Source: Zootoca vivipara (Eukaryota). From it: a stretch of 64,000 bases of DNA. Positions 2,460 through 52,956 of the stretch are shown one piece after another. The position numbers and the translations under genes were made by a program. Below the pieces are notes generated by a model that did not search any database, was not told where the DNA came from, and worked only from the letters and a program-made list of their open reading frames with translations. The stretch covers positions 5,394,001 through 5,458,000 of the forward strand of contig NC_083282.1 of assembly GCF_963506605.1 (NCBI RefSeq), written 5' to 3'. Position 1 is the first letter of the stretch. Each line of letters begins with the position of its first letter.

Positions 2460-3010
2460 AATGGAGGGCAAGGAAGCGGCGCCTGCCTGGGCCCGCTCCG
2501 CCCCCTCTGCCGCCGAGCAGGAAGGGGCGGGCGGCTGCCGGGCGAGCGATGCATTAGCGGCGGCCCTGGAGGCGAGGCAGGGCTTTGCTGCTGAGGCGAG
2601 CGGAGAGGCACCCAAGATGGCCCCTGCTGCAGAGGCGGCCGTGGCAGCAGCAGAGGGCCGGAGGGCGGAAGGGAAGGCCGCGGCCGCCCGGCTCCTGCTG
2701 CTGGTGGAGGACAAGGAGAAGGAGGGCGCGACGGCCACGTCCGTGGCCCGCAGCTGAGAGGAGCTGCCGCCGCCGCCGCCGTGAGGTAAGCGGGAGTCTC
2801 CCCGGTGGGCGGGTGGCGGGGAACAATAGGGCGGAGGCTGCGGCCTTCTCCTCTCTTTCCCTTCGGGCCGGCGGCGCCTCTACCTGGCATTGCGGCTGGT
2901 GTCTCCGTGCGAGACGACCCAGCGGCCTCTTCCACCATTTCCCCTCCACTTCGTCGCCGCCTCTGTAGGCCTCAGGCTTCTGCCGTGCGCTTTCCGCCCC
3001 CGCGGCTTCG
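2460..3010 (+). promoter_or_regulatory. CpG island promoter / first exon region of RC3H1
   Basis: Very GC- and CpG-rich block in an AT-rich background; GC boxes (ggggcggg ~2524), YY1-like CAAGATGGC at 2613-2621, (GCC)n run at 2765-2780. Confidence 0.85.
2560..2785 (+). other. RC3H1: RC3H1 non-coding exon 1 (5' end approximate)
   Basis: Strong donor GAG|GTAAGC at 2785/2786 inside the only promoter-like CpG island upstream of the first coding exon; the TSS cannot be fixed from sequence. Confidence 0.7.

Positions 3011-3070: not shown

Positions 3071-3120
<50 letters not shown>
3071..3120. repeat. (TG)25 microsatellite
   Basis: Perfect dinucleotide run. Confidence 0.98.
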
Positions 3121-3128
<8 letters not shown>

Positions 3129-4832
3129 CAACCCAGTATTCTTGGCTAGGACGTGCGCGGGGGTGGGTGGAACCCCTTGCCAGGTGTGATCCTCATTGAC
3201 CCTCGGTGGGAATTATCTCTGACAGCTCAGCTTCATGCATGTCTACTCAGAAGCGCCCCCATTAAGTTCAGTGGTACTTACTCCCGAGTAAGTGTGTGTG
3301 TGGATCGCACTCTAAAGTAAACACACAAACAGATAGGATCACATTGCGCACGTCCATACTTCTTAGGGGAGAGCGCTGTCCCACATGTTAAAAGATCACA
3401 CATGCTTTTATTCTGTGCCTCTGTTCCCTAAATGTAGCTTCTATGTTCAGTCCCTGAAGCTTTTTGGGTTCTGACATTGACCTCCCCATGATCTTTTGAA
3501 CATTATCCCTGGCAGTAGTTACTGTACTCAAGGGAGGAAAGAAACGTTAAAAACACAGAACAAAATGTAATTCTAAAAATTCTGGAGGAGTACAAGTACC
3601 CCTACCTTCTGTATATTTATCATGTATGTAACTTTCAGTGTCATGGTTTCAGAGGATTGGACAAAAGTCTGCTTCCCAGGAAATGAAGAATCTGGTTTGG
3701 CTACCTCAAGCAAGCAAACAATCAAGCAAGCAAACCTTTGTGTTCAGGGAGAGAGTTGATATTGAGCAGGAAGTGACATCTGCAAACAGTTCACCAAGAA
3801 GCCATGAAAAATTTCATTGCACAAAATGAAGGCTGTTTAGTTTATTCCTCACCCATCTCTTCATAAACACAACTGTCACACCGATTATTTTGTTAGAATA
3901 AATTGTGATTTATTTATTTTGACTTCTATCAGATAGTGTTTTGGTTATGAGAGAGCATTGTGAATTGTGTTCATGAAAATTAACAGGAATTTGTATTTAC
4001 TTACCTGGTCGCCACAGGTGATCAAGAATGAAGAACACATAGAATTCATTATTTAAGGAATTTTTACTCCACTCTTTAGCTGAAAAGCCTTCTAGAATGG
4101 CTTACAAAGATCAGCATCAATATAGTCCCCGTACCCAGGATTATATTCTAAAATGATATATAAAAATGCATTCAAGTGAGTAAACAGAATGACAGGGCCT
4201 GAGGGACAGGTCAACCTGCCTTTTCTCTGCTAGCTTGCTCAGCTTCCATCATTACTTGGTATTGAACCCCCATCATATTTAGCAAGTATGAAAACATTAT
4301 GTCCTGGTGGAATAAGGACAGATAAGTTGCTCTTTACTTCCTCCACCTGCTCACTCAGGTTCTGTGCTGGCTGTAGGGAGTGAAATCCCTTCTACTCTGA
4401 CCAGCCCATAAACCAAATAAGCTGGCAGAGGAGGATGCTGTGATCAATCCTCCTCTGCCAGACTTCTGCATTTTCCTGCAAGATCTGCAGAAAATAAAGC
4501 TCTTCCCTGCAGGTCCAGTATAGAAAGGGGGGTGCTGGTGGCAAAAGGACAAGGCGATCATTGGCTTTGCTACTAGCCCATCACATTTCTATGCTGAAGG
4601 CACAACAGACAAAGCCCTCGTTTGCACATGTAGCATATAAATCAGTTGGGCTAATAGAAGAGGCAGATAAGTGCTCCATGCCTCTTCTGGCGCCTGCTGC
4701 AGTTCTAGTCTACAGGTTTTTTAGTTCTTTTTGCTAGCAGATAATGTCAACTGTTAAGGCTGTGTGGGTCTTGTACCCAAAGGAAGCATTTGATTGCATG
4801 TGATGAAATGCTTGCTTGTAGGAGATACTGTA

Positions 4833-7868: not shown

Positions 7869-8665
7869 TATGTTCTTTTAAGTAGCAAATTAAGTTTAGA
7901 TTGCATTGTGTGTACAGTCATCCCCCCCCCACTTAATGTTCTGGGCCTCTGCGCATATAAGCAAAAATTGCATAAGTGCGGAGAACCCTCTAAATGCCCA
8001 GTTTTTAATTATTGTTAATATTATTTACTAATTAATTAATTTTGTATATGGCCCTATACCCCCAGGTCTCAGGGCAGTTTCTGCTCTCCAGTTCTCTCTC
8101 GCCCTCTCTCTACACACATCTCTTTTGTTCAACTAGAGTTTAAGCTCTGGGGCTGGCTGAAAACTGGAGGACACTCAGAAAAGTGGCTGCTGCTGCGCTA
8201 CCTTGCACATCAGCTGTTAGGCGGGGAGGCTGAGCAGTCTAAACAAAGCCCTCCTTGACATCCTCTTTGGGCTCCAGAGAGGGTCTCTTCACAAGCCATG
8301 AGGACTCTAACTCTCTCCCACCATTTCCTGGTTTGAATTTATTTTTTCTTTCCCAGCACTGTGCATGTATGCAATCACGTGTGAGTCAATCACACATAAA
8401 TGGGAACGGTGCCTGCATTAATTTTTTTATTGGATTTTTTTTTATCTGTCAGTTTATCAGGTTGACTGTTTTCTTTTAAATATTTATATTCCACTTTTCC
8501 AGGCAAAGCCTGTTCAAAGCAGTTTACAACAATAAGGAGTTACAACTGTAAAAAAATACTCCAGGAATAAAGATAAAATGCATTCAGAAACTTCCATACC
8601 ATCTGATTAGCTCTCAGACTGGCATCCTTTATTAGTGCTGAATTGAAGTAGATTATACAGTAATA

Positions 8666-13073: not shown

Positions 13074-14835
13074 TATGAATCATAGATCATATGAATGTAG
13101 AGTTGGAAGGGACCCCAGAGGTCATATAGTCTGCAGTGCGGAAACTCATTTGGGAGGATTATGACTGATTGTGTGGCATTATGATTAGTGCCACAATTTT
13201 TTGGGGGCTGTCTGTGTGATTAATGATTCTGGAACATTGACAAAGTGGCTGTCATGCAGATGTGTTTTCAGTAGATTGCATTCCAAAATCCACAGTTGAG
13301 CTATGTCTTTATTAGAGCCAACCCAAATATCACAAAATAATGAAGTAGCTTTTGATTCCTTCATTATTCACCATCTGGTTGGATGTTAAGCAAGCAGGCA
13401 TGGGGAGAGAAGCAAGCTCACTTGAAGGCACAGCCTTTGTGGCTTCAACTTCAAGGCAGCTTGTTTTTCTCCCCACTCTTTGTTTGCTTAGCATCTATCC
13501 TGAAGAACTCAAAAGCTTGCTAGATGTTTTTGTCATACTTTGACCGGTCTTATGTTGTCTAACTGATGGCCTTTCATTTTAATTGATTATAAGTGATGAT
13601 TTTATCATAAGAACTGGCCCTTGGTGGTGAGAGTTTATTCTTTACTTGTACTGTCGTCTGCATGGCAGTCTGTTGTCTCTAGACTACCATGGTGGTATTG
13701 TCATTGTGATTTTTTGGTAGCCTTAAGATTCTAGACCAGTTTTCTCCAACCTGGTGTCCTCCAAACATTTTGGAATAAAATGTCCACAATCTCTAACCAC
13801 AGGTCACGTTGGCTGGGGCTGATAGGAGTTGTAGTTTAAAAGGAGACTAATAGAAATGTATTGATTTCATTGGGTCTACTCTGAGAATGTTAGATATACT
13901 CACTAAGAAAACAATGTGGATTAAGAATAGCAAAGCAAACTAAGTGATTTGATTGAGAATCCTAGGCCAAATCTTCCTACTCGCTTGCTAAATATTTGGC
14001 CTTTTCCCAACTTCATCCAAGCTACATAGTTTAAAAAAGAATTTCTAAGTTTCCTAGAATGTCCTAACATCTAACATTTTTGGATAAAGTTATTAATGAC
14101 CTAATTGGTGCTATGGGCCAGGGTGCTCTTGTCTTCATCTGGAAAGTCAGACAGGAACAAAGGAGGAAATGAGTCACTCTGCAAACATCTTTTGGACCAG
14201 ATATTTTCCATCTTTTATGTTAATTGCATTCCTTGCATAGGTGAGCCCACCTAGGTTGATAATGGCTGTCCATATTCTAACCAGGGAAATCATAATTGGA
14301 CTGTTGTGTACCCTAGTCTCTCTGATACATTCAAACCCAAGTTTTCCAGGTCCAAATTTACCACTGTTCACTTCTCATGAAATTCTGGCCTATGCACAGT
14401 GACCATTCCAGTGAGATTCTTCTGCGAACCTCATTGTAAGTGTTTCATCGCTTTTCCAGGGCAGAAGTAGAAATGTGTCATGTTCTCTGTCCAGAATTTC
14501 TTATCTTTCATTTTCAAAAATGTTGTGCATTGCCTACAGAACAGCTATAGGACTTAGAAAGTTACATTAGCTTTTGGAATAGGGGTAAGGGAATGGCTGA
14601 GAGAATATTAGTCATCTTTAATATAATATATTCAAAGAGGTTATAGTAAGAAGACATCTTAGTGGTATATATAAACAGCCTTCTTCATTCTAAGTAAGTT
14701 CAAATGACAACAAGTTGTGCCAGTATCCTGCCACAACACGGTTAGTAGAGCTGTTACTATCTCCCATTTCAGTACAGGATGAATGGATCACAGTTAAGTC
14801 ATTATGAGGCGCTTAAGTTGGGCTTTGTTCTTGTC

Positions 14836-14892
14836 AGCCAATCACTGGGCTTGCACTTGGTTGCTTATTTGAATAGCCAGAACTATATAAGA
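14836..14892 (+). promoter_or_regulatory. Histone H2B-type core promoter: CCAAT, octamer-like H2B box, TATA
   Basis: gCCAATca (CCAAT 14838-14842), CTTATTTGAATA 14864-14875 (octamer ATTTGCAT with one mismatch), TATATAA 14884-14890; ATG 76 nt after the TATA end. Confidence 0.7.
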
Positions 14893-14965
14893 TTATTTCA
14901 GGGGACAGGGTATGAGCATTTTCAGGCAGGCAGGGAATTTGGCTGTGTGAACTTAAAGTCAAACA

Positions 14966-15361
14966 ATGGCTGCTACCACCCGGAGAACCAGGAAAAAAAG
15001 CCAGGTGCATCAAAGGCAACGGTACAGGACACAGTATAGGCAGAGAAGGCCCAGAGGGGGGAAGATACTTGGGAGGCATGCAAAACATGGCCATGGAAAG
15101 AAGCTCCCTGACAGAAGGCCATCCAAGAAAGCACAGAAACTGCGGCTTGACAGTGTTCGAATGACCAACGAAGCCCAGAACATCTTGCATTTCTGTGTGC
15201 ATGACCTCTACAAGAAGGTGTCCTTGGCTGCTGAGCGCTTGAGGAAAAAGAAGCGCCATGTCTCTATTACTGTCTCAGATGTAAGAAATGCCCTGAAAAA
15301 GATCATGCCAAGGAAGTATGACAGAAAGTCTGTATCCTCCATTCCCTGCAAATGCCGTTAG
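14966..15361 (+). CDS. Divergent histone H2B-like protein (131 aa), intronless, nested in RC3H1 intron 1
   Basis: Kozak aaacaATGG; 41/131 residues K+R; ungapped by-eye alignment of aa 66-124 to H2B 54-112 (A..I....V.D........A.RL........IT......A.....P.......VS); own promoter and polyA signal. Confidence 0.8.
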   Translation: MAATTRRTRKKSQVHQRQRYRTQYRQRRPRGGKILGRHAKHGHGKKLPDRRPSKKAQKLRLDSVRMTNEAQNILHFCVHDLYKKVSLAAERLRKKKRHVSITVSDVRNALKKIMPRKYDRKSVSSIPCKCR

Positions 15362-15742
15362 AGACATCTCTCCCCTTTCCTATGACAGGCTTAGAAATGG
15401 AAGAAAGAAGGGAAAGGGGGGAAAGCACTAGCCTGAGAGAAAATCCAGTACTTTGCCTGCCTGAAAAAAAACACCACCTTCAAATTTCCAAGCAATCCTG
15501 TAACCTACCTTTTTATTACTGGATCAACATCCCCACTAATAATGAACTCGAGGAAGGGCAGAATCTGGCATTCTGAAGATCATGACAAGATGATTATCAT
15601 ATTGCCCTTATGCTGAATCAGGGAGATGGATTATTGGGTGTTGGAAGAAAATGACTTGTCAAGTTGTGGAATATCAAGGACTCTAATCAGCAACTGTGGA
15701 GCATGTGAGGTGTTCCCTAAAGGGAGACATATTCCCTTTTTC

Positions 15743-15748
15743 AATAAA
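15743..15748 (+). terminator. Polyadenylation signal of the nested H2B-like gene
   Basis: AATAAA ~380 nt after the stop, followed by GU/U-rich sequence (ctgtgtcttt...ctggttctt, ~15776-15800). Confidence 0.55.
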
Positions 15749-17374
15749 ACAGGATCTGTGCAGGAGAACTCATCACTGTGTCTTTAATATTCTGGTTCTT
15801 CAGAACTATACATTTATTAGGGGAAGGCTAGCTTATGTAGTTTATGGAGGCTGTGTTTTGCATACTCTTTAGAACTTGTAATAATGTTTGACTACGATTT
15901 TTTTTAAAATAAAAATAAGTGATATCAGAATTAGATAGAAATGGAAAGTATGTAGGATGCAACACATTGGGATTGTATCACTGAATATTGCTGTAAATGT
16001 GTCTTGAATTGCATTGCCTTTAAAATTGTGGAAAAGGAATTTTAAACAGGACATTATGTTAGGGGCTTTATCTGAGAATATGTCCATATTGGTCCCAAAG
16101 ATTACCTGATAAAGGGCTTTTTTGTGTACTCACTTTTTGCCATGTATGTTCAGTATCGTAGCAGCTGTTACTTTAAAATGGTGATTAGGTAGTGAATTGC
16201 ACTGGTTCTTTTCCTAATGTTTCTTCCTTAGTTGGAAAGATGTTGCAAATAGGCATTTTATACAATTTATATAATAACCCTGAAAGGTTAACAATTCAAG
16301 TGCTTACTGTATTTCCCAAAATGCCTATTTGCAACATCAAGTCAAATGTTTGGGGTACCTATCCCCAGAAGTCACCATAGGACATATGCATATAATATCC
16401 CTGATGTAAGGATATAATTTCTCTCTTTTCCTCTGGTGCAATAAAATTTTTCTATGGATTTGCAGCTGAGGCAACTGCTAGTTTGCCCCAAATTTTGTGG
16501 TAATCAAGGCGCTTCAGAAGCAAAAGTAAGGTCCAGTTTTTTCAATGTTCAAACTTCTCTACCACTATCATGTGGCATATTTTACTTGATCAGAAGAGAG
16601 TCTTTGTTTCACTGTTCTGTATAGCTGTGGAAATTCTGTGTAACAGAAACTCGAAACGTTTCATGTATGTTGCAACTGAGTCATACTTTTATAAAGGTGT
16701 AGTTGTGATTTTAACTTTGAGAGATGTTTGAATTGTGAAAGCTTTGCAGCGCTGTTAGAATGAGGATTTTGAAGTGCAGGAGACAAATTTTTATTTGTCT
16801 GTTATTATGATATATTTTGAAATGTCAGTTGAACAAAAAATTGCAGACCTGCAGTGAATTGGTTTGTGGTTCTTTTTGTGAAAGTGTTAACTACATTTGT
16901 TAATGGGGAAATGCCAGTGGTGTGTTTTGTACTTTTAAAAAATAAAACCTTTATGGTAACCTATGATGTGTACCAGGAAAAAATATATTCTGCAACCTGT
17001 ATAATTTTTGATAATTACTGCATTTACATGGCTGTTTTTGCATGATTTTTAAACTTCTGGAGCACCTCAGTGGGAGTTGGGGCACGGTGCTTTAGTGGTT
17101 CTGCTCCTATTCCAGGGCCAATTCCAGAAAGCAGTTAGGGAAGACTGCTTTTCAGTCCCATGGGAGTTGTCGTGTGGTGTCCTGCATGGTTCCATCTTCT
17201 TCTGCCATGCTGTGAGGCCTCTGAGCTGTCATCTAATGTGGAGTGAAGTGCTATCAATATGCAGGCAACACCCAGCCCTGTTCCATCTGAATCAGAAGAG
17301 ATGGCTGAGGTGTTCGATCAGTGCTTGGAGGTGGTGACTGACTGAATTTGAGCAGTGTTAGAAATTCAGATATA

Positions 17375-18332
17375 CAGTCATGGAAAAAAATAAAGTGCAC
17401 CCTCTTTTAATTCTGTGGACATAATAACAATCATCTGTCCCTAAGCGGGTCTTAAAATTAGGTAAATGCAACCTCAGATGAACAATGCATGACATATTAC
17501 ATTGTGTTATGATTTATTTAACAGAAATAAAGCAAAAATGGAGAAGCTATATGTACACCTTATGATTCAGCAGCTTGTAGAACCACCTTTATCAGCAGTA
17601 GCTCTATGTGAGCATTGCACGGTCTGACCTTGAGGTGAATTTGCTGGGACGTCCACTCCTGGGAAGATTGGCACCTGTCTTGAATGTTTTCCACTTTTGA
17701 ATCATCTTTCTCACTGTAGAATGATGGACATAAAATTGGTTGGAGATGGCCTTAGAACCCTCCCCAGTTACGTGGGCAGCAACAATTGCTTCTCAGAGCA
17801 CTGCTGATGTCTTTCCTCCTTGGCATTGTGTTAAAACATACCTGAATGCTTTAGACCAGGCATAGGCAACCTTGGCTCTCCAGATGTTTTGGAACTACAA
17901 CTCCCATGATCCCTAGCTAACAGGGCCAGTGGTCAGGAATCATGGGAGTTGTAGTTCCAAAACATCTGGAGAGCCAATGTTACCTATGCCTGCTTTAGAC
18001 CAGCAATCTGCTGAAACTTCAACTTTTATAGAGGAGGTTAGACTTGCTGATGATCAATTAAGCAAGGGCATTTGATTAGCAGCACCCGTCTGCTACTTAG
18101 CCCCTTAATTTCTATGGAAGCAGTAAGGGTGTACTTAGTTTTTCACACATGGCTTCCCCATTTTTGCTTTATTTTTGTAAGTCATGACACGGTGTAACAT
18201 GCCATGTGTTGTTGTTCATCTGAGGTTGTATTTACCCAATTTTAAGACTTGCTAATGAACAGATAATTGTTATTATGTCCTCATAAGTAAAACCACAGAA
18301 TTCAAAGAGGGTGCACTTTTTTCCCATGACTG
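17375..18332 (-). mobile_element. Internally deleted Tc1 DNA transposon with ~200-bp TIRs
   Basis: TA|cagtcatgg...ccatgactg ends and long inverted arms. The minus strand from 17826 encodes a degenerate Tc1 paired-domain start (MPRRKDIS...HHSTVRKMIQKWKTFKTGANLPRSGRPSKF). Confidence 0.85.
17857..17992. mobile_element. hAT-type MITE nested in the Tc1 element
   Basis: caggcatagg...cctatgcctg TIRs; 8-bp TSD ctttagac. Confidence 0.9.
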
Positions 18333-19514: not shown

Positions 19515-20000
19515 AATCATAGAGTTGGAAGAGACCACAAGGGCCATCCAGTCCAACCCCCTGCCAAGCAGGAAACACCATCAAAGCATTCTTGACACAT
19601 GGCTGTCAAGCCTCTGCTTAGAGACCTCCAAAGAAGGAGACTCCACCACACTCCTTGGCAGCAAATTCCACTGTCGAACAGTTCTTACTGTCAGGAAGTT
19701 CTTCCTAAAGTTTAGGTGGAATCTTCTTTCTTGAAGTTTGAATCCATTGCTCCATGTCAGCTTCTCTGGAGAAACAAAAACAACCTTTCTCCCTCCTCTA
19801 TATGACATCCTTTTATATATTTGAACATGGCTGTCATATCACCCCTTAACCTTCTCTTCTCCAGGCTAAACGTACCCAGCTCCCTAAGCTGTTCCTCATA
19901 AGGCATTGTCTCCAGGCCTTTGACCATTTTGGTTGCCCTCCTCTGGACACGTTCCAGCTTGTCAGTATCCTTCTTGAACTGTGGTGCCCAGAACTGGACA
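19515..20000 (-). mobile_element. CR1 LINE 3' fragment
   Basis: [25 protein letters not shown]...EKRRLRGDM and TVRQWNLLP motifs. Confidence 0.92.
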
Positions 20001-21231
20001 AATAAATAATGATTATTATTTATTCCTGCTCTGCTAATCATATAGGCAGTGACAATTTGCATCCTGACCACTGAAGTTCCCTGCAAGTTTCAGAGATTTA
20101 CCACACTTTGTCTCTTATCAGCAGCAAGGACTGGAAATGTGTCTTCTTATAGAAGGTGGATTGTGAATCAGGATGCTGAAAACCATGACCAATGCATTCC
20201 CTGTATTTTACACACAATTAATGAATATGCACACATGACAGATGCATTTGTTTTGATCTGTCTAGTTTAAACTGAGCCCTAGGATCTGGTTGGAGGATTA
20301 TTTACTTGAGGTATCCTTAAGGCTGTGCACTTGCAGATATTGGCTGGTGGAAATATAAGAGCCTGTCATCATAAATCAAAAGAGCTGTATGATTTTTGTG
20401 TGCAAAAGAGGTGTATTTAAAAACAAAACAAAAAACTGTTCCTCTCACTAAATGATTTATTGCATAGTTCAACTTTGCCAGGAAGCTTATGAAAGTGTCT
20501 TGAGAAACGCACCCATTACCTCTTGATTTTATGGTTACTTCCTGTGAAGCACAAGAAACTAGCAACCTTCTGAACCATGGACTTTCTGAACATAGAGATG
20601 TAGCTTACCATCTCCACACTGGCATTTCAGCAATGAAAGCATTTCAAGGTACTGGTATAGCATAGCAGCTAAGAGTACAGACTATTAAGTCAGGTAGTCC
20701 CTGACTTCAGGATCATTCTCATTGACTACATACTCATTTGGTTGACCATATACAAGTCTCTATTTTCCTCCCATCATGTGTGTATAATAAAACTGGCTAA
20801 GTTTATGAGATTGTATCTATAGTTGAATATGCATTTTATGCTAAACAAGGGGTGGCCAATATAGTGTCCTGCAGGTGTTGCCAGCCCCAGACAACATGAT
20901 CAGTGGCAACAACTAGAGGGCACCATGTTGGCTTCCCCTGTGCTAAATCATGGTTTAGTGCAGTGAGCACAAGCTGCAGTGAGCCACAGACACTTCTCCC
21001 CTTTCCCCTCCCATGTTGTCTGGAGGAGTTCAGAAACTTGCTTTCTGTCTCACTTAAACTTAGCTGGTATTTTTGTCAGAACTGGGGATTGTGATTTAAT
21101 GTTAACCATGGTCAGTTTCAAAATAAGCCAACTTTAAACCATAGGTAATAAAGCAGTTTTGTTTAAACAAAGATTTAACTTAAGCATGATGTACGAATGT
21201 AGCTACTGTGTCTCAAGTTATTATATATCTA

Positions 21232-40119: not shown

Positions 40120-41690
40120 CACCCTCACCTCCAGTGTTTTTGCTCAAACCTTTTTTACTTCATTATAATCTTTATCTATTATAAAAAGTTCCTTTATTTT
40201 AATTATTTTATTTTATATTTTTCTTCCGCTGCTTTATATCTCGAATCCTGCCTGTGATTCCATTTGACTATGATGCTTTTTCAAATAGTCTATGAACAGC
40301 CTCCATTCTTCTATAAAAAGCTCATCATTTTGATCTCTCTATTTTTTCTGTCCATTATTGACATTTCTGTATAGTCTGTATACTTTCAAAAGCCTATCCT
40401 CCTTTGTTGAAACCTTCTCTTCTTTCTGTTTCTGTGCATATCATATTCTAGCAGCTGTTGTCACATACATAAATAATATGGTCATCTTCTTTGGAGCATC
40501 TGTCTCTATTATCCCTATAAGAAAAGCTTCTGGTCTTTTGGGAATAGCCCATTTAAACATTTTCTTCATTTCATTATATAATTTCCCAAAAGGCTTTAGC
40601 TGTTGTCCACCACATATGGAAGAATGACCCTTCTATCCCTTTGCATTTCCAGCATTTACTTGACACATTTTTATACATCTTGGCCAGTTTATTTGGTGTT
40701 AAATATTAGAATCATTAAATCATAGAGTTGGAAGAGACCACAAGGGCCATCCAGTCCAACCCCCTGCCAAGCAGGAAACACCATCAAAGCATTCCTGACA
40801 GATGGCTGTGAAACCTCCGCTTAAAGACCTCCAAAGAAGGAGACTCCACCACACTCCTTGGTAGCAAATTCCACTGCCGAACAGCTCTTACTGTCAGGAA
40901 GTTCTTCCGAATGTTTAGGTGGAATCTTCTTTCTTGTAGCTTGAATCCATTGCTCCGTGTCCGCTTCTCTGGAGCAGCAGAAAACAACCACCCTCCCTCC
41001 TATATATGACATCCTTTTATATATTTGAACATGGCTATCATATCACCCCTTAACCTTCTCTTCTCCAGACTAAACATACCCAGCTCCCTAAGCCGTTCCT
41101 CATAAGGCATTGTTTCCAGGCCTTTGACCATTTTGGTTGCCTTCCTCTGGACACGTTCCAGCTTGTCAGTGTCCTTCTTGAACTGTGGTGCCCAGAACTG
41201 GACACAGTACTCCAGGTGAGGTCTGACCAGAGTGGAATACAGTGGTACTATTACTTCCCTTGATCTAGATGCTATACTCCTATTGATGCAGCCCAGAATT
41301 GCATTGGCTTTTTTTAGCTGCTGCATCACACTGTTAACTCATGTCAAGTTTGAGGTCTACCAAGACTCCTAGATCCTTTTCACATATACTGCTCTCAAGC
41401 CAGGTGTCACCCATCCTGTATTTGTGCCGTTCATTTTTTCAATATTATCAATTCCTTTATCCATGTCAAACATGCTGCATCATAATATAATTTTAGATTT
41501 GGAAGTGAGCCCCCTCTTTCCCCCTTTTCATCCTAACCTCACATTGTAAGAAAAAAAATAAAGAAAAAGAAATATTTGGAAATGAGAATCTACCTCTTTC
41601 TTTAGTATCTGTTAATATTTTAAATGTAATACTTGGTTTCTTGCCTTGCCAAATGATCTTAGCTCTTTTTGCCATTTAAAGCATCCAATA
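40120..41690 (-). mobile_element. Degraded L1 ORF2 3' fragment, interrupted by a CR1
   Basis: Minus strand reads KCWKCKGIEGSFFHMWWT...PEAFLIG...TTAARI (L1 C-terminal CCHC region). Confidence 0.7.
40709..41440 (-). mobile_element. CR1 LINE 3' fragment inserted into the L1
   Basis: [43 protein letters not shown]; TSD aatatta (40702-40708 / 41441-41447). Confidence 0.93.
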
Positions 41691-43586: not shown

Positions 43587-45489
43587 AACTGGCTGTCCAA
43601 CGAGGCCTTACGAATAGCGGAGGAGAGGAGGCAAGCAAAATGCAAGGGAGATAGGGAAAGATACAGGAAACTGAATGCAGATTTCCAAAAAACAGCAAGG
43701 AGAGACAAGAGCAATGCAATGAGCAATGCAAAGAAATAGAGGAAAACAATAGAATGGGGAAAACCAGAGATCTGTTCAAGAAAATTGGAGATATGAAAGG
43801 AACATTTCGTACAAAGATTACCATAATCAAGGACAAAAGTGGTAAGGACCTAACAGAAGCAGAAGACATCAAGAAGAGGTGGCAAGAATACACAGAGGAA
43901 TTATACCAGAAAGACATGGAGGTTTCATACACCCCAGGTAGTGTGGTTGCTGACCTTGAGCCAGACATCTTGGAGAGTGAAGTCAAATGGGCCTTAGAAA
44001 GCACTGCTAATAACAAGGCCAGTGGAAGTGATGATATTCCAGCTGAACTATTTAAAATTTTAAAAGATGATGCTGTTAAGGTGCTACACCCAATATGCCA
44101 GCAAGTTTGGAAAACTCAGCAATAGCCAGAGGATTGGAGAAGATCAGTCTACAGCCCAGTCCCAAAGAAGGGCAGTGCCAAAGAATGCTCCAACTGCCGC
44201 ACAATTGCGCTCATTTCACACGCTAGCAAGGTTATGCTTAAAATTCTACAAGGCAGGCTTAGGCAGTATGTGGACCGAGAACTCCCAGAAGTGCAAGCTG
44301 GATTTCGAAAGGGCAGTGGAACCAGAGACCAAATAGCAAACATGCGCTGGATTATGGAGAAAGCTAGAGAGTTCCAGAAAAATGTCTACTTCTGCTTCAT
44401 TGACTATGCAAAAGCCTTTGACTGTGTCGACCACAGCAAACTATGGCAAGTTCTTAAAGAAATGGGAGTGCCTGATCACCTCATCTGTCTCCTGAGAAAT
44501 CTCTATGTGGGACAAGAAGCTACAGTTAGAACTGGATATGGAACAACTGATTGGTTCAAAATTGGGAAAGGAGTACGACAAGGTTGTATATTGTCTCCCT
44601 GCTTATTTAACTTATATGCAGAATTCATCATGCGAAAGGCTGGACTAGATGAATCCCAAGCCGGAATTAAGATTGCCGGAAGAAATATCAACAACCTCAG
44701 ATATGCAGATGACACAACCTTGATGGCAGAAAGCGAGGAGGAATTAAAGAACCTTTTAATGAGGGTGAAAGAGGAGAGCGCAAAATATGGTCTGAAGCTC
44801 AACATCAAAAAAACCAAGATCATGGCCACTGGTCCCATCACCTCCTGGCAAATAGAAGGGGAAGAAATGGAGGCAGTGAGAGATTTTACCTTCTTGGGCT
44901 CCTTGATCACTGCAGATGGTGACAGCAGTCACGAAATTAAAAGACGCCTGCTTCTTGGGAGAAAAGCAATGACAAACCTAGACAGCATCTTAAAAAGCAG
45001 AGACATCACCTTGCCGACAAAGGTCCGTATAGTTAAAGCTTTGGTTTTCCCAGTAGTGATGTATGGAAGTGAGAGCTGGTCCATAAAGAAGGCTGATCGC
45101 CCAAGAATTGATGCTTTTGAATTATGGTGCTGGAGGAGACTCTTGAGAGTCCCATGGACTGCAAGAAGATCAAACCTATCCATTCTTAAGGAAATCAGCC
45201 CTGAGTGCTCCCTGGAAGGACAGATCCTGAAGCTGAGGCTCCAATACTTTGGCCACCTCATGAGAAGAGAAGAATCCTTGGAAAAGACCCTGATGTTGGG
45301 AAAGATTGAGGGCACTAGGAGAAGGGGACGTCAGAGGACAAGATGGTTGGACAGTGTTCTCGAAGCTACGAACATGAGTTTGACCAAACTGCGGGAGGCA
45401 GTGCAAGACAGGAGTGCCTGGCGTGCTATGGTCCATGGGGTCACGAAGAGTCGGACACGACTAAACGACTAAACAACAACAACAACAAA
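43587..45489 (+). mobile_element. BovB (RTE) LINE, 5' truncated, RT domain nearly intact
   Basis: FIDYAKAFDCVDH, GVRQGCILSPCLFNLY, NLRYADD, FELWCWRRLLRVPW; (CAA)n tail; 13-bp TSD agacattccattg (43574-43586 / 45490-45502); premature TAG at 44123. Confidence 0.96.
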
Positions 45490-51599: not shown

Positions 51600-52956
51600 C
51601 AGTGGTACCTCGGTTTATGAACACAATTGGTTCCAGAAGTCTGTTCATAAACTGAAGCGAACTTTCTCATTGAAAGTAATGGAAAGTGGATTAATCCGTT
51701 CCAGATGATGAAAAACACCCCCTAAAACAGCAATTTAACACAAATTTTACTAATGAGACCATTGATCCATAAAATGAAGGCAATAATCAATGTACTGCAC
51801 TATAAAATAATTAAGACAGTATTGTCCCTTATGTCCACTGATGATAGTCAGTTTGGATAGGGGGCTTTTATCCATTTCTGCAGCCACACAATCAACCAGT
51901 AGCTGAACTGGGTTCCACACAGTCACAAAAAAAAGTCACAAAAATAAAGCCACAAGCCGCAGTCACAAAAGCAAAAAACAAAGTGTTTTCTTACCTAACT
52001 TTGGGGCTGGGAAGCTACCTGCTGGACATCATCCTGCGGGGCAGTTGTGGAGGCCTCTGGGCCTCTGCAGCTGGAGGCCAATTGCGGGGCCTCTGTAGGA
52101 CGCTCCAAGTTCCCATAATCTTAGAGCTGGGAGGGGCCCCCAGGGTCATCTAGCTGAACCCCCTGCAATTATTTTTGCCCACGACCCTGAGATTTAATAG
52201 CCCTCCTGCCCCCCCCCAAATGGCTGGCGGATGGGGGGGGGAAGCGAACATGAACCTGAAGCGGCGGCGGCAGCAAAGGGGAGAAAACCAGCGGCCGCCT
52301 AGTGGAGAAGAGGGTAGTCCGGGGGTGGGCGGGGGGGAAAGAAGGGAAGCAGCCTTGGATCGGGGCCTCTGCGGAGGTCCGGAATGAAGCCCCGGCCTCT
52401 GCGAAGCCATCCGAGGCTCCGTTGCTGCAGCGCAGCCTCGGATGGCTTCGCGGAGGCCAGGGCTTTGATCCGGACCTCCGCAAAGGCCCAGGCTTGGATC
52501 GGGTCTCCGCGGAGGTCCGGATCGAAGCCCCGGCCTCTGCGAAGCCATCCGAGGCTCCGTTGTTGCAGCACAGTCTCGGATGGCTTTGCGGAGGCCGGGG
52601 CTTTGATCCGGACCTCCGCAAAGGCCCAGGCTTGGATCGGGTCTCCGCGGAGGTCCGGAACGAAGCCCCGGCCTCCGCGAAGCCATCCGAGGCTGCGCTG
52701 CAGCAACGGAGCCTCGGATGGCTTCGCAGAGGCCGGGGCTTTGATCCGGACCTCCGCAAAGGCCCAGGCTTGAATCAGGACCTCCGCGAAGGTCCGGAGC
52801 GAGGCCCCGGCCTCCGCTAAGCCATCTGAGGGCCTCCGGTGCTGCAGCGGAGGCCTTCCTTGGCCTCGAACACCTCGGGTTACTTACTTCCGGGTTTCGG
52901 TTGTTCGTAAACCGAATGTTCGTAACCCGAGGTGTTCGTAAACCGAGGTTCCACTG
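51600..52956. mobile_element. Large Tigger/pogo-type non-autonomous element with GC-rich cargo
   Basis: TA|cagtggtacctcggttta ... taaaccgaggttccactg|TA; contains a SINE/CR1 tail fragment (~52113-52168) and a 138-bp tandem repeat. Confidence 0.8.
52355..52860. repeat. 138-bp GC-rich tandem repeat (~3.5 copies), each unit a palindrome
   Basis: gcggaggtccgg anchor recurs at 52371, 52509, 52647 and ~52786. Confidence 0.95.

Follow-up and report, generated by a model that had tools for sequence, protein, structure and literature searches.

A Candidate Replication-Independent Histone H2B Variant Gene Nested in the Presumed First Intron of Roquin-1 in the Lizard Zootoca vivipara

An Intronless ORF for a Hyper-Basic Protein Lies on the Roquin-1 Strand

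The window, by which we mean the whole 64,000-nucleotide stretch of Zootoca vivipara DNA analyzed here, contains an intronless ORF of 131 codons on the forward strand, which starts in the context aca-ATG-G and is preceded by an in-frame stop 12 nt 5′ of the ATG (Table 1). Farther 3′ on the same strand lies an exon whose translation corresponds to residues 1–78 of Roquin-1 (phmmer against PDB 4txa, E 9.4e-50), followed by more Roquin-like exons, and on the other side of the ORF lies a GC island that, on base composition rather than RNA, likely represents the Roquin-1 promoter and non-coding exon 1. Because the ORF is located between the island and the first coding exon, it falls in the presumed first intron of Roquin-1 (RC3H1), on the strand of its host, as an earlier first-pass annotation had proposed. 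The intact single exon and the start context described in that annotation were likewise recovered, both in the ORF read-out and in a transcript contig colinear with the genome (see below). A tblastn search of the 64-kb window found no further family member besides this ORF.

Table 1. Coordinates of the H2B-like gene and of the Roquin-1 features that flank it in the window
Feature	Position	Strand	Basis
GC island (72% GC); likely Roquin-1 promoter and non-coding exon 1	2501..3000	+	Base composition
CCAAT box	14838..14842	+	Sequence read-out
Octamer-like element ATTTGAAT, one mismatch to the H2B-box octamer ATTTGCAT	14867..14874	+	Sequence read-out
TATA box, TATATAA	14884..14890	+	Sequence read-out
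Unspliced polyadenylated-type transcript, minimum extent	14952..15765	+	809-nt contig, run X1
Coding sequence of the H2B-like variant protein, 131 codons and stop	14966..15361	+	ORF, homology, transcript contig
N-terminal tail, Arg/Lys/Gln-rich, aa 1–56	14966..15133	+	21 K+R and 1 D+E; low-confidence/disordered in models
Cut-down histone-fold region, aa 57–124	15134..15337	+	AlphaFold2, VIA-align, conservation
C-terminal tail SIPCKCR and stop codon	15338..15361	+	Alignment of clade members
Polyadenylation signal AATAAA	15743..15748	+	Sequence read-out
Roquin-1 first coding exon, RING domain, MPVQAPQW...	26035..26268	+	phmmer vs PDB 4txa

The encoded protein has a mass of 15.5 kDa and a pI of 11.7, with 31% Lys+Arg (41 K+R against 7 D+E in 131 aa) and three cysteines, two of them in a C-terminal C-x-C motif. 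This motif is present in seven of the eight aligned members of its clade, the exception being P0007, and the SIPCKCR tail that carries it stands in place of most of alphaC and of the K120 region of H2B. By itself, the length of the ORF is not beyond chance, given that many stop-to-stop ORFs of at least 75 aa occur in the window. An ATG-initiated antisense ORF of 141 aa (14834–15259, −) overlies the coding region; most likely it is open simply because sense codons rich in AAG/AGA yield few stops on the other strand.

The remainder of the window holds several repeats. Directly 3′ of the GC island is a (GT/CA)n microsatellite (3090–3130). In a Roquin-1 intron farther 3′, a 448-aa open frame (44126–45469, +) matches the reverse transcriptase model PF00078 (E 1.2e-39); this fragment of a LINE-type element carries the single reverse transcriptase of retroelement origin that was confirmed. 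Just 5′ of it, a 156-aa frame (43655–44122, +) has no Pfam match. A GC-rich tandem repeat (52350–52849) consists of 3.6 copies of a 138-bp unit with 89% matches; several of its frames are open on either strand, and it lacks a Pfam match. Two further ORFs, 19760–20089 (−) and 41003–41338 (−), have one peptide stretch in common and no Pfam match, and belong to a single family of interspersed repeats.

Sequence Comparisons Point to Descent from H2B

We compared the protein with all PDB sequences using phmmer, and only H2B chains were matched (E 8e-7 to 0.02), in a gapless alignment of query residues 65–124 with H2B residues 53–112. The offset of +12 and the gapless correspondence to alpha2-L2-alpha3-alphaC are those drawn by eye in the first-pass annotation, in which all 13 of the 13 listed identities turned out to be correct. 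Identity to canonical H2B over the fold is about 22%. A profile built from 13 family members, which provided the profile search for a histone fold that had been suggested as a check, matched H2B with E values of 6.7e-14 (about 7e-14) to 4e-12, and the roughly 60 matches listed were all H2B. Both the single-sequence and the family-profile searches are thus specific for H2B over H2A, H3, H4 and NF-Y.

The Pfam histone model gave a different picture for the window protein alone, as the suggested check against PF00125 returned no match at E up to 10; a sub-threshold match of the window protein to the Pou model was judged to be chance. Of 22 more distant members of the family, 11 touch PF00125 at E up to 1, the best at 6e-7, and P0040 reaches 16.2 bits against a cut-off of 26.4 bits. 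The nearest cluster in the ESM Atlas is a chordate one, labeled “putative Histone H2B-like” and without a named Pfam domain. Judged by sequence comparison, the gene derives from H2B.

A Conserved Promoter and a Polyadenylated-Type Transcript

In addition to its coding sequence, the gene has a CCAAT box, an octamer-like element and a TATA box upstream and an AATAAA signal downstream, so that the promoter motifs and polyA signal ascribed to it at first reading are indeed its own (Table 1). In several relatives in the databases, upstream DNA has been wrongly translated into an N-terminal extension. In local alignments with the translation of the window promoter, these extensions stand well clear of shuffled controls, with scores of 83 (shuffle maximum 42) for P0006, a gecko orthologue of clade I, 67 (45) for P0009 of clade II and 62 (46) for P0014 of clade III (the clades are described below), and tblastn recovers the correspondence too. 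The extension of gecko P0006 keeps both the octamer-like stretch, translated as “LNS” (TTGAATAG), and the TATA stretch, translated as “YIR” (TATATAAG). The promoter block conserved from clade I to clade III includes the CCAAT box and the octamer-like element, with the TATA box conserved in the orthologue. Such conservation fits a duplication at the DNA level of the gene together with its promoter, the promoter still being used.

The histone 3′ stem-loop (Rfam RF00032) was not found in 13500–17500, even at E up to 5, suggesting a replication-independent, polyA-type gene; the location inside Roquin-1 and the transcript end described below agree with this assignment. Weak Rfam matches to miRNA and lncRNA families near the locus are far under their gathering scores and were discarded.

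A transcript-like contig of 809 nt was found in run X1, from a sister Podarcis species, at a depth of 91.5. It is colinear with the window, from which it differs by 16 substitutions and five gaps, and it starts 14 nt 5′ of the ATG and ends 17 nt 3′ of AATAAA. These boundaries and the depth give it the shape of an unspliced polyadenylated mRNA and not of a genomic contig; X1 is presumably an RNA run, a reading for which we rely on the same boundaries and depth. Three further runs from the study that produced X1 contain an equal share of matching words. A 247-nt low-depth contig from run X6, over the promoter, was taken for intronic or genomic background and not for mRNA. A 33-nt stretch of the 3′ UTR (15477–15509) recurs in an unrelated, higher-depth contig of 2507 nt from the sister species (X1 contig 2) and is probably a short shared repeat.

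In two Zootoca vivipara RNA-seq runs, of each of which about 6% was read, zero reads fell on 14903–15505, while a few reads mapped to the flanking intron. That the coding region lacks reads in runs in which the flanking intron has them suggests restricted expression, and points to a gene expressed in some samples only, rather than a silent one. A published gecko testis transcriptome, obtained with a mouse array, contains nothing on H2B.

The Fold Is Nearly Frozen Across Squamates

Orthologues were matched beyond chance, with E values of 1e-72 to 1e-36. They include proteins of Podarcis lilfordi (P0001, 96% identity, named “histone”), Pogona vitticeps (80%, “H2B.5-like”), the snake Pituophis catenifer (78%, “H2B, gonadal-like”) and the gecko Sphaerodactylus (66%, “Uncharacterized protein”), a partial protein of the gecko Gekko kuhli (80% identity over the 38% of the query that is covered, “hypothetical protein”), and three unlabelled, unnamed Logan contigs with 66–75% identity. 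Identity is concentrated in the fold (aa 57–124): 66 of 68 residues are identical to the snake protein and 67 of 68 to that of Pogona, against 31 and 34 of the 56 residues of the N-terminal tail, respectively, and the geckos share 55–58 of 68 fold residues and 25–26 of 56 tail residues. The lineages of lacertids and snakes parted roughly 170 My ago, and a fold that has kept 66–67 of its 68 residues since then is incompatible with neutral drift. The first-pass annotation had described the gene as a fast-evolving variant; within squamates the fold is instead nearly frozen, and its low identity to canonical H2B reflects an old divergence.

The comparison with the sister species leads to the same picture. 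When the 12 coding differences of the X1 contig are introduced into the window coding sequence, the translation is exactly the Podarcis lilfordi protein P0001. Seven of these differences are synonymous and five nonsynonymous, the latter all in the tails, and the four differences in the N-terminal tail are all nonsynonymous, to or from basic or Pro residues; the fold region has four synonymous changes and no nonsynonymous one. Nei-Gojobori dN/dS for this pair, a small sample of 12 substitutions, comes to 0.20 for the whole coding sequence, 0 for the fold and 0.49 for the tails, in agreement with the deeper squamate comparison. A dN/dS near 1 in related lizards had been named beforehand as a sign of decay, and the value for this one pair is well away from it. 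Taken together, these comparisons show purifying selection on the fold, as read from aligned orthologues.

These data bear directly on whether the ORF might be a chance reading frame or a decaying H2B pseudogene, an explanation to which the identity of about 22% over the fold, the missing Pfam match and the frequency of chance ORFs of similar length in the window lend some color. It is contradicted by the conservation pattern, namely intact squamate orthologues with a near-invariant fold and only synonymous changes in the fold relative to the sister species, as well as by the conserved promoter and the high-depth transcript-shaped contig. We thus reject both forms of this explanation as hardly credible, and the earlier view of a functional gene rather than a decayed pseudogene stands.

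A Cut-Down Histone Fold Is Predicted

We modeled the protein in two AlphaFold2 runs, with alignments of 13 and 35 rows, and the results agree. Both predict, with pLDDT >90 over aa 68–113, an alpha2 helix (aa 68–96), an alpha3 helix (aa 103–113) and a four-residue alphaC stub (aa 115–118), whereas the N-terminal 60 residues are of low confidence. Helix alpha1 was predicted in neither run, and the 35-row alignment did not restore it, so that the models contain part of the alpha1-L1-alpha2-L2-alpha3 fold and its alphaC rather than the whole. The residues aligned with the hydrophobic positions of alpha1, which we take to be I39, Y40, V41, Y42, V44 and L45 in human H2B numbering, are R, R, P, S, K and A. 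Both glutamates of the H2B acidic patch are replaced, by K117 and S125 in the H2B-like protein, which presumably correspond to E105 and E113 of human H2B; the chain ends at what we take to be the equivalent of H2B residue 119, and would hence be without the K120 ubiquitylation site.

Structure comparisons of the model gave a similar assignment. The top Foldseek matches are nearly all H2B chains and the rest NF-Y-type histone-fold chains, none at E ≤1e-3, and VIA-align superposes aa 59–122 on H2B residues 44–113 with a middling Z of about 7. These results are consistent support alongside the sequence evidence, and not independent proof. On the models, the loss of alpha1 would be a serious departure from the canonical histone handshake, and entry into nucleosomes may not happen.

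Such a departure raises an alternative in which the gene is functional and H2B-derived, with a product that acts as a free basic protein outside nucleosomes. It could possibly serve as a sperm nuclear basic or protamine-like condenser, or as a structural part outside chromatin; mammalian H2B.L/subH2B is a structural component of the subacrosomal perinuclear theca. The absence of alpha1 from both models with R, R, P, S, K and A at its hydrophobic positions, the pI of 11.7 with 41 K+R in 131 aa, and the three cysteines including the terminal C-x-C are what one might expect of such a protein, and Raman et al. 2022 raise the same option for the truncated H2B.N and H2B.L (PMC8857922). Yet the strongest constraint falls on the alpha2-L2-alpha3 handshake unit, for which a simple polycationic condenser has no need, and the tails, which bear most of the charge, evolve much faster than the fold. 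We consider a purely non-nucleosomal protein unlikely on balance, though worth retaining beside the reading of the gene as an H2B variant.

The Family Extends to Turtles, Alligator and Birds

The family was assembled with an exhaustive phmmer search and two profile searches, and a maximum-likelihood tree of its members was computed. The phmmer search, against 1.84 billion representatives, gave nine matches, four of them without a name; the named ones are reptilian, with the exception of one repetitive 521-aa protein (E 2e-4). In the tree, which has starred clades, the members form five groups. Clade I (support 100/99) is squamate-wide and holds the window gene; clade II, its sister, has only geckos among its named members, and I and II together comprise 13 rows with a support of 100/99. 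Clade III, also squamate (100/100), has a C-N-K-C motif at the alphaC position and includes P0028, a second Podarcis lilfordi gene of 144 aa whose 97-Mb contig also carries that species' orthologue of the window gene. Clade IV (97/90) contains turtles, alligator and birds, and its less-diverged members still have KVLKQ in alpha1, while a second turtle set, near the root of the tree, retains PRE-VAKH. The last profile search added bird sequences and a single canonical H2B from a nematode, and nothing further. Mammals and amphibians contributed no member, a weak negative since that search saturated at 8000 scored candidates.

The gene had been suspected to represent a squamate-specific class, which holds for its immediate, squamate-wide clade and fails for the family, with its turtle, alligator and bird members. 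Nor is it unrecognized, as had been stated: NCBI and UniProt pipelines already predict its orthologues (“histone,” “H2B, gonadal-like,” “H2B.5-like”), and automated “H2B-like” names are already on many family members. Full-text literature searches gave no paper on such an H2B variant in reptiles or birds.

Relation to Known H2B Variants

Compared with canonical H2B, the lizard protein has a homologous, gapless alpha2-L2-alpha3 and start of alphaC, and its gene shares the intronless structure and the CCAAT, octamer-like and TATA promoter layout. It differs in being only about 22% identical, in having lost the hydrophobic face of alpha1 and all but one turn of alphaC, in having K/S for E105/E113, no K120 equivalent, three cysteines and a pI of 11.7, and in being encoded by a single-copy gene with an AATAAA signal and no stem-loop found, in the intron of an unrelated gene. 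The lizard protein resembles histone- and protamine-like sperm nuclear basic proteins in being extremely basic, in its Arg-rich tail and in having cysteines potentially able to cross-link, and is set apart from them by its conserved histone-fold core.

H2B.L/subH2Bv, compared by description, is likewise intronless, very divergent and single-copy, with a basic N terminus. Its genomic neighborhood is probably different from that of the lizard gene. Raman et al. 2022 distinguish seven classes of mammalian H2B variants. They trace H2B.L and H2B.N back to the ancestor of mammals and found neither in chicken, their only outgroup when dating the clades; H2B.K alone was found outside mammals (PMC8857922). 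This date and the lack of a chicken counterpart would separate H2B.L from the lizard gene. H2B.K resembles the lizard gene as a replication-independent H2B variant present in reptiles and birds; in contrast to it, H2B.K is near-canonical and intron-containing, H2BK1 adjoining ABCF2 and H2BN1 adjoining MYO1D-DT, both with an intron (PMC9526256). The lizard gene is intronless and lies in RC3H1, so by gene structure it is neither H2B.K nor H2B.N.

The resemblance to H2B.N is closer at the level of the protein, as both have a highly divergent fold with a C-terminal truncation that removes alphaC and the acidic patch, H2B.N itself being a protein that may be non-nucleosomal (PMC8857922). H2B.N differs in that its intron splits the fold-coding region, its neighbor is MYO1D-DT, it is reported from mammals alone (PMC9526256, PMC8857922), and it is expressed in oocytes and embryos (PMC8857922); instead of two exons in the MYO1D neighborhood, the lizard locus is RC3H1 and its contig is colinear with the genome.

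These comparisons also bear on whether the sauropsid family is a (co-)orthologue of H2B.L/subH2B or H2B.N, which would make it part of a known, amniote-wide class. The H2B.N-like C-terminal truncation and the intronless, very divergent H2B.L-like gene would agree with this (PMC8857922), and the negative result outside sauropsids is weakened by the saturated profile search. Against it are the dating of both classes to the mammalian ancestor without a chicken counterpart (PMC8857922), the two-exon structure of H2B.N near MYO1D as opposed to an intronless gene in RC3H1, and the outcome of the exhaustive phmmer search, whose named matches are reptilian but for the repetitive protein. Such orthology appears quite improbable, and we retain mammalian germline H2B variants as a reasonable analogy.

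Discussion

Our preferred reading, to which we assign a probability of about 0.88, is that the locus is a functional, replication-independent H2B variant gene with its own H2B-type promoter, nested in sense orientation in RC3H1 intron 1. The intronless gene would be driven by its CCAAT, octamer-like and TATA elements and would give rise to a polyadenylated mRNA of about 0.85 kb from the same strand as Roquin-1. The product would be a hyper-basic protein of 131 aa, in which a disordered Arg/Lys/Gln-rich tail precedes a predicted cut-down H2B fold. Its retained alpha2/alpha3 handshake surface may pair with an H2A-type partner, giving a dimer without an acidic patch, or else the protein may act as a histone/protamine-like condenser of DNA. 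Germline (spermatid) chromatin would be its most likely setting, if the mammalian germline variants of H2B are a guide.

A broader and more tentative proposal, to which we give somewhat less than even odds, is that the family represents an independent sauropsid class of “minimal” H2B that has converged with mammalian germline variants, its members being histone-to-protamine intermediates in the repackaging of sperm chromatin in reptiles and birds. This class would span at least four or five clades and would have arisen independently of the mammalian germline H2B variants, losing alpha1, alphaC, the acidic patch and K120 while gaining a hyper-basic tail and cysteines. With the usual dating of the squamate-archelosaur split, it would be >250 My old.

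Systematic surveys of H2B variants have so far been made in mammals only. A cut-down H2B family conserved to such depth in sauropsids would mean that mammals are not alone in germline-style innovation of this histone. The family would also offer a natural experiment on the share of the H2B fold that can be removed while the alpha2-alpha3 core remains strictly selected. For annotators, the locus is a case of a gene that lies within RC3H1 intron 1 on the sense strand, has a polyA site of its own, and should be kept apart from its host. Finally, the chromatin transitions of spermiogenesis are poorly known in reptiles and birds, and the family would supply named candidates for them.
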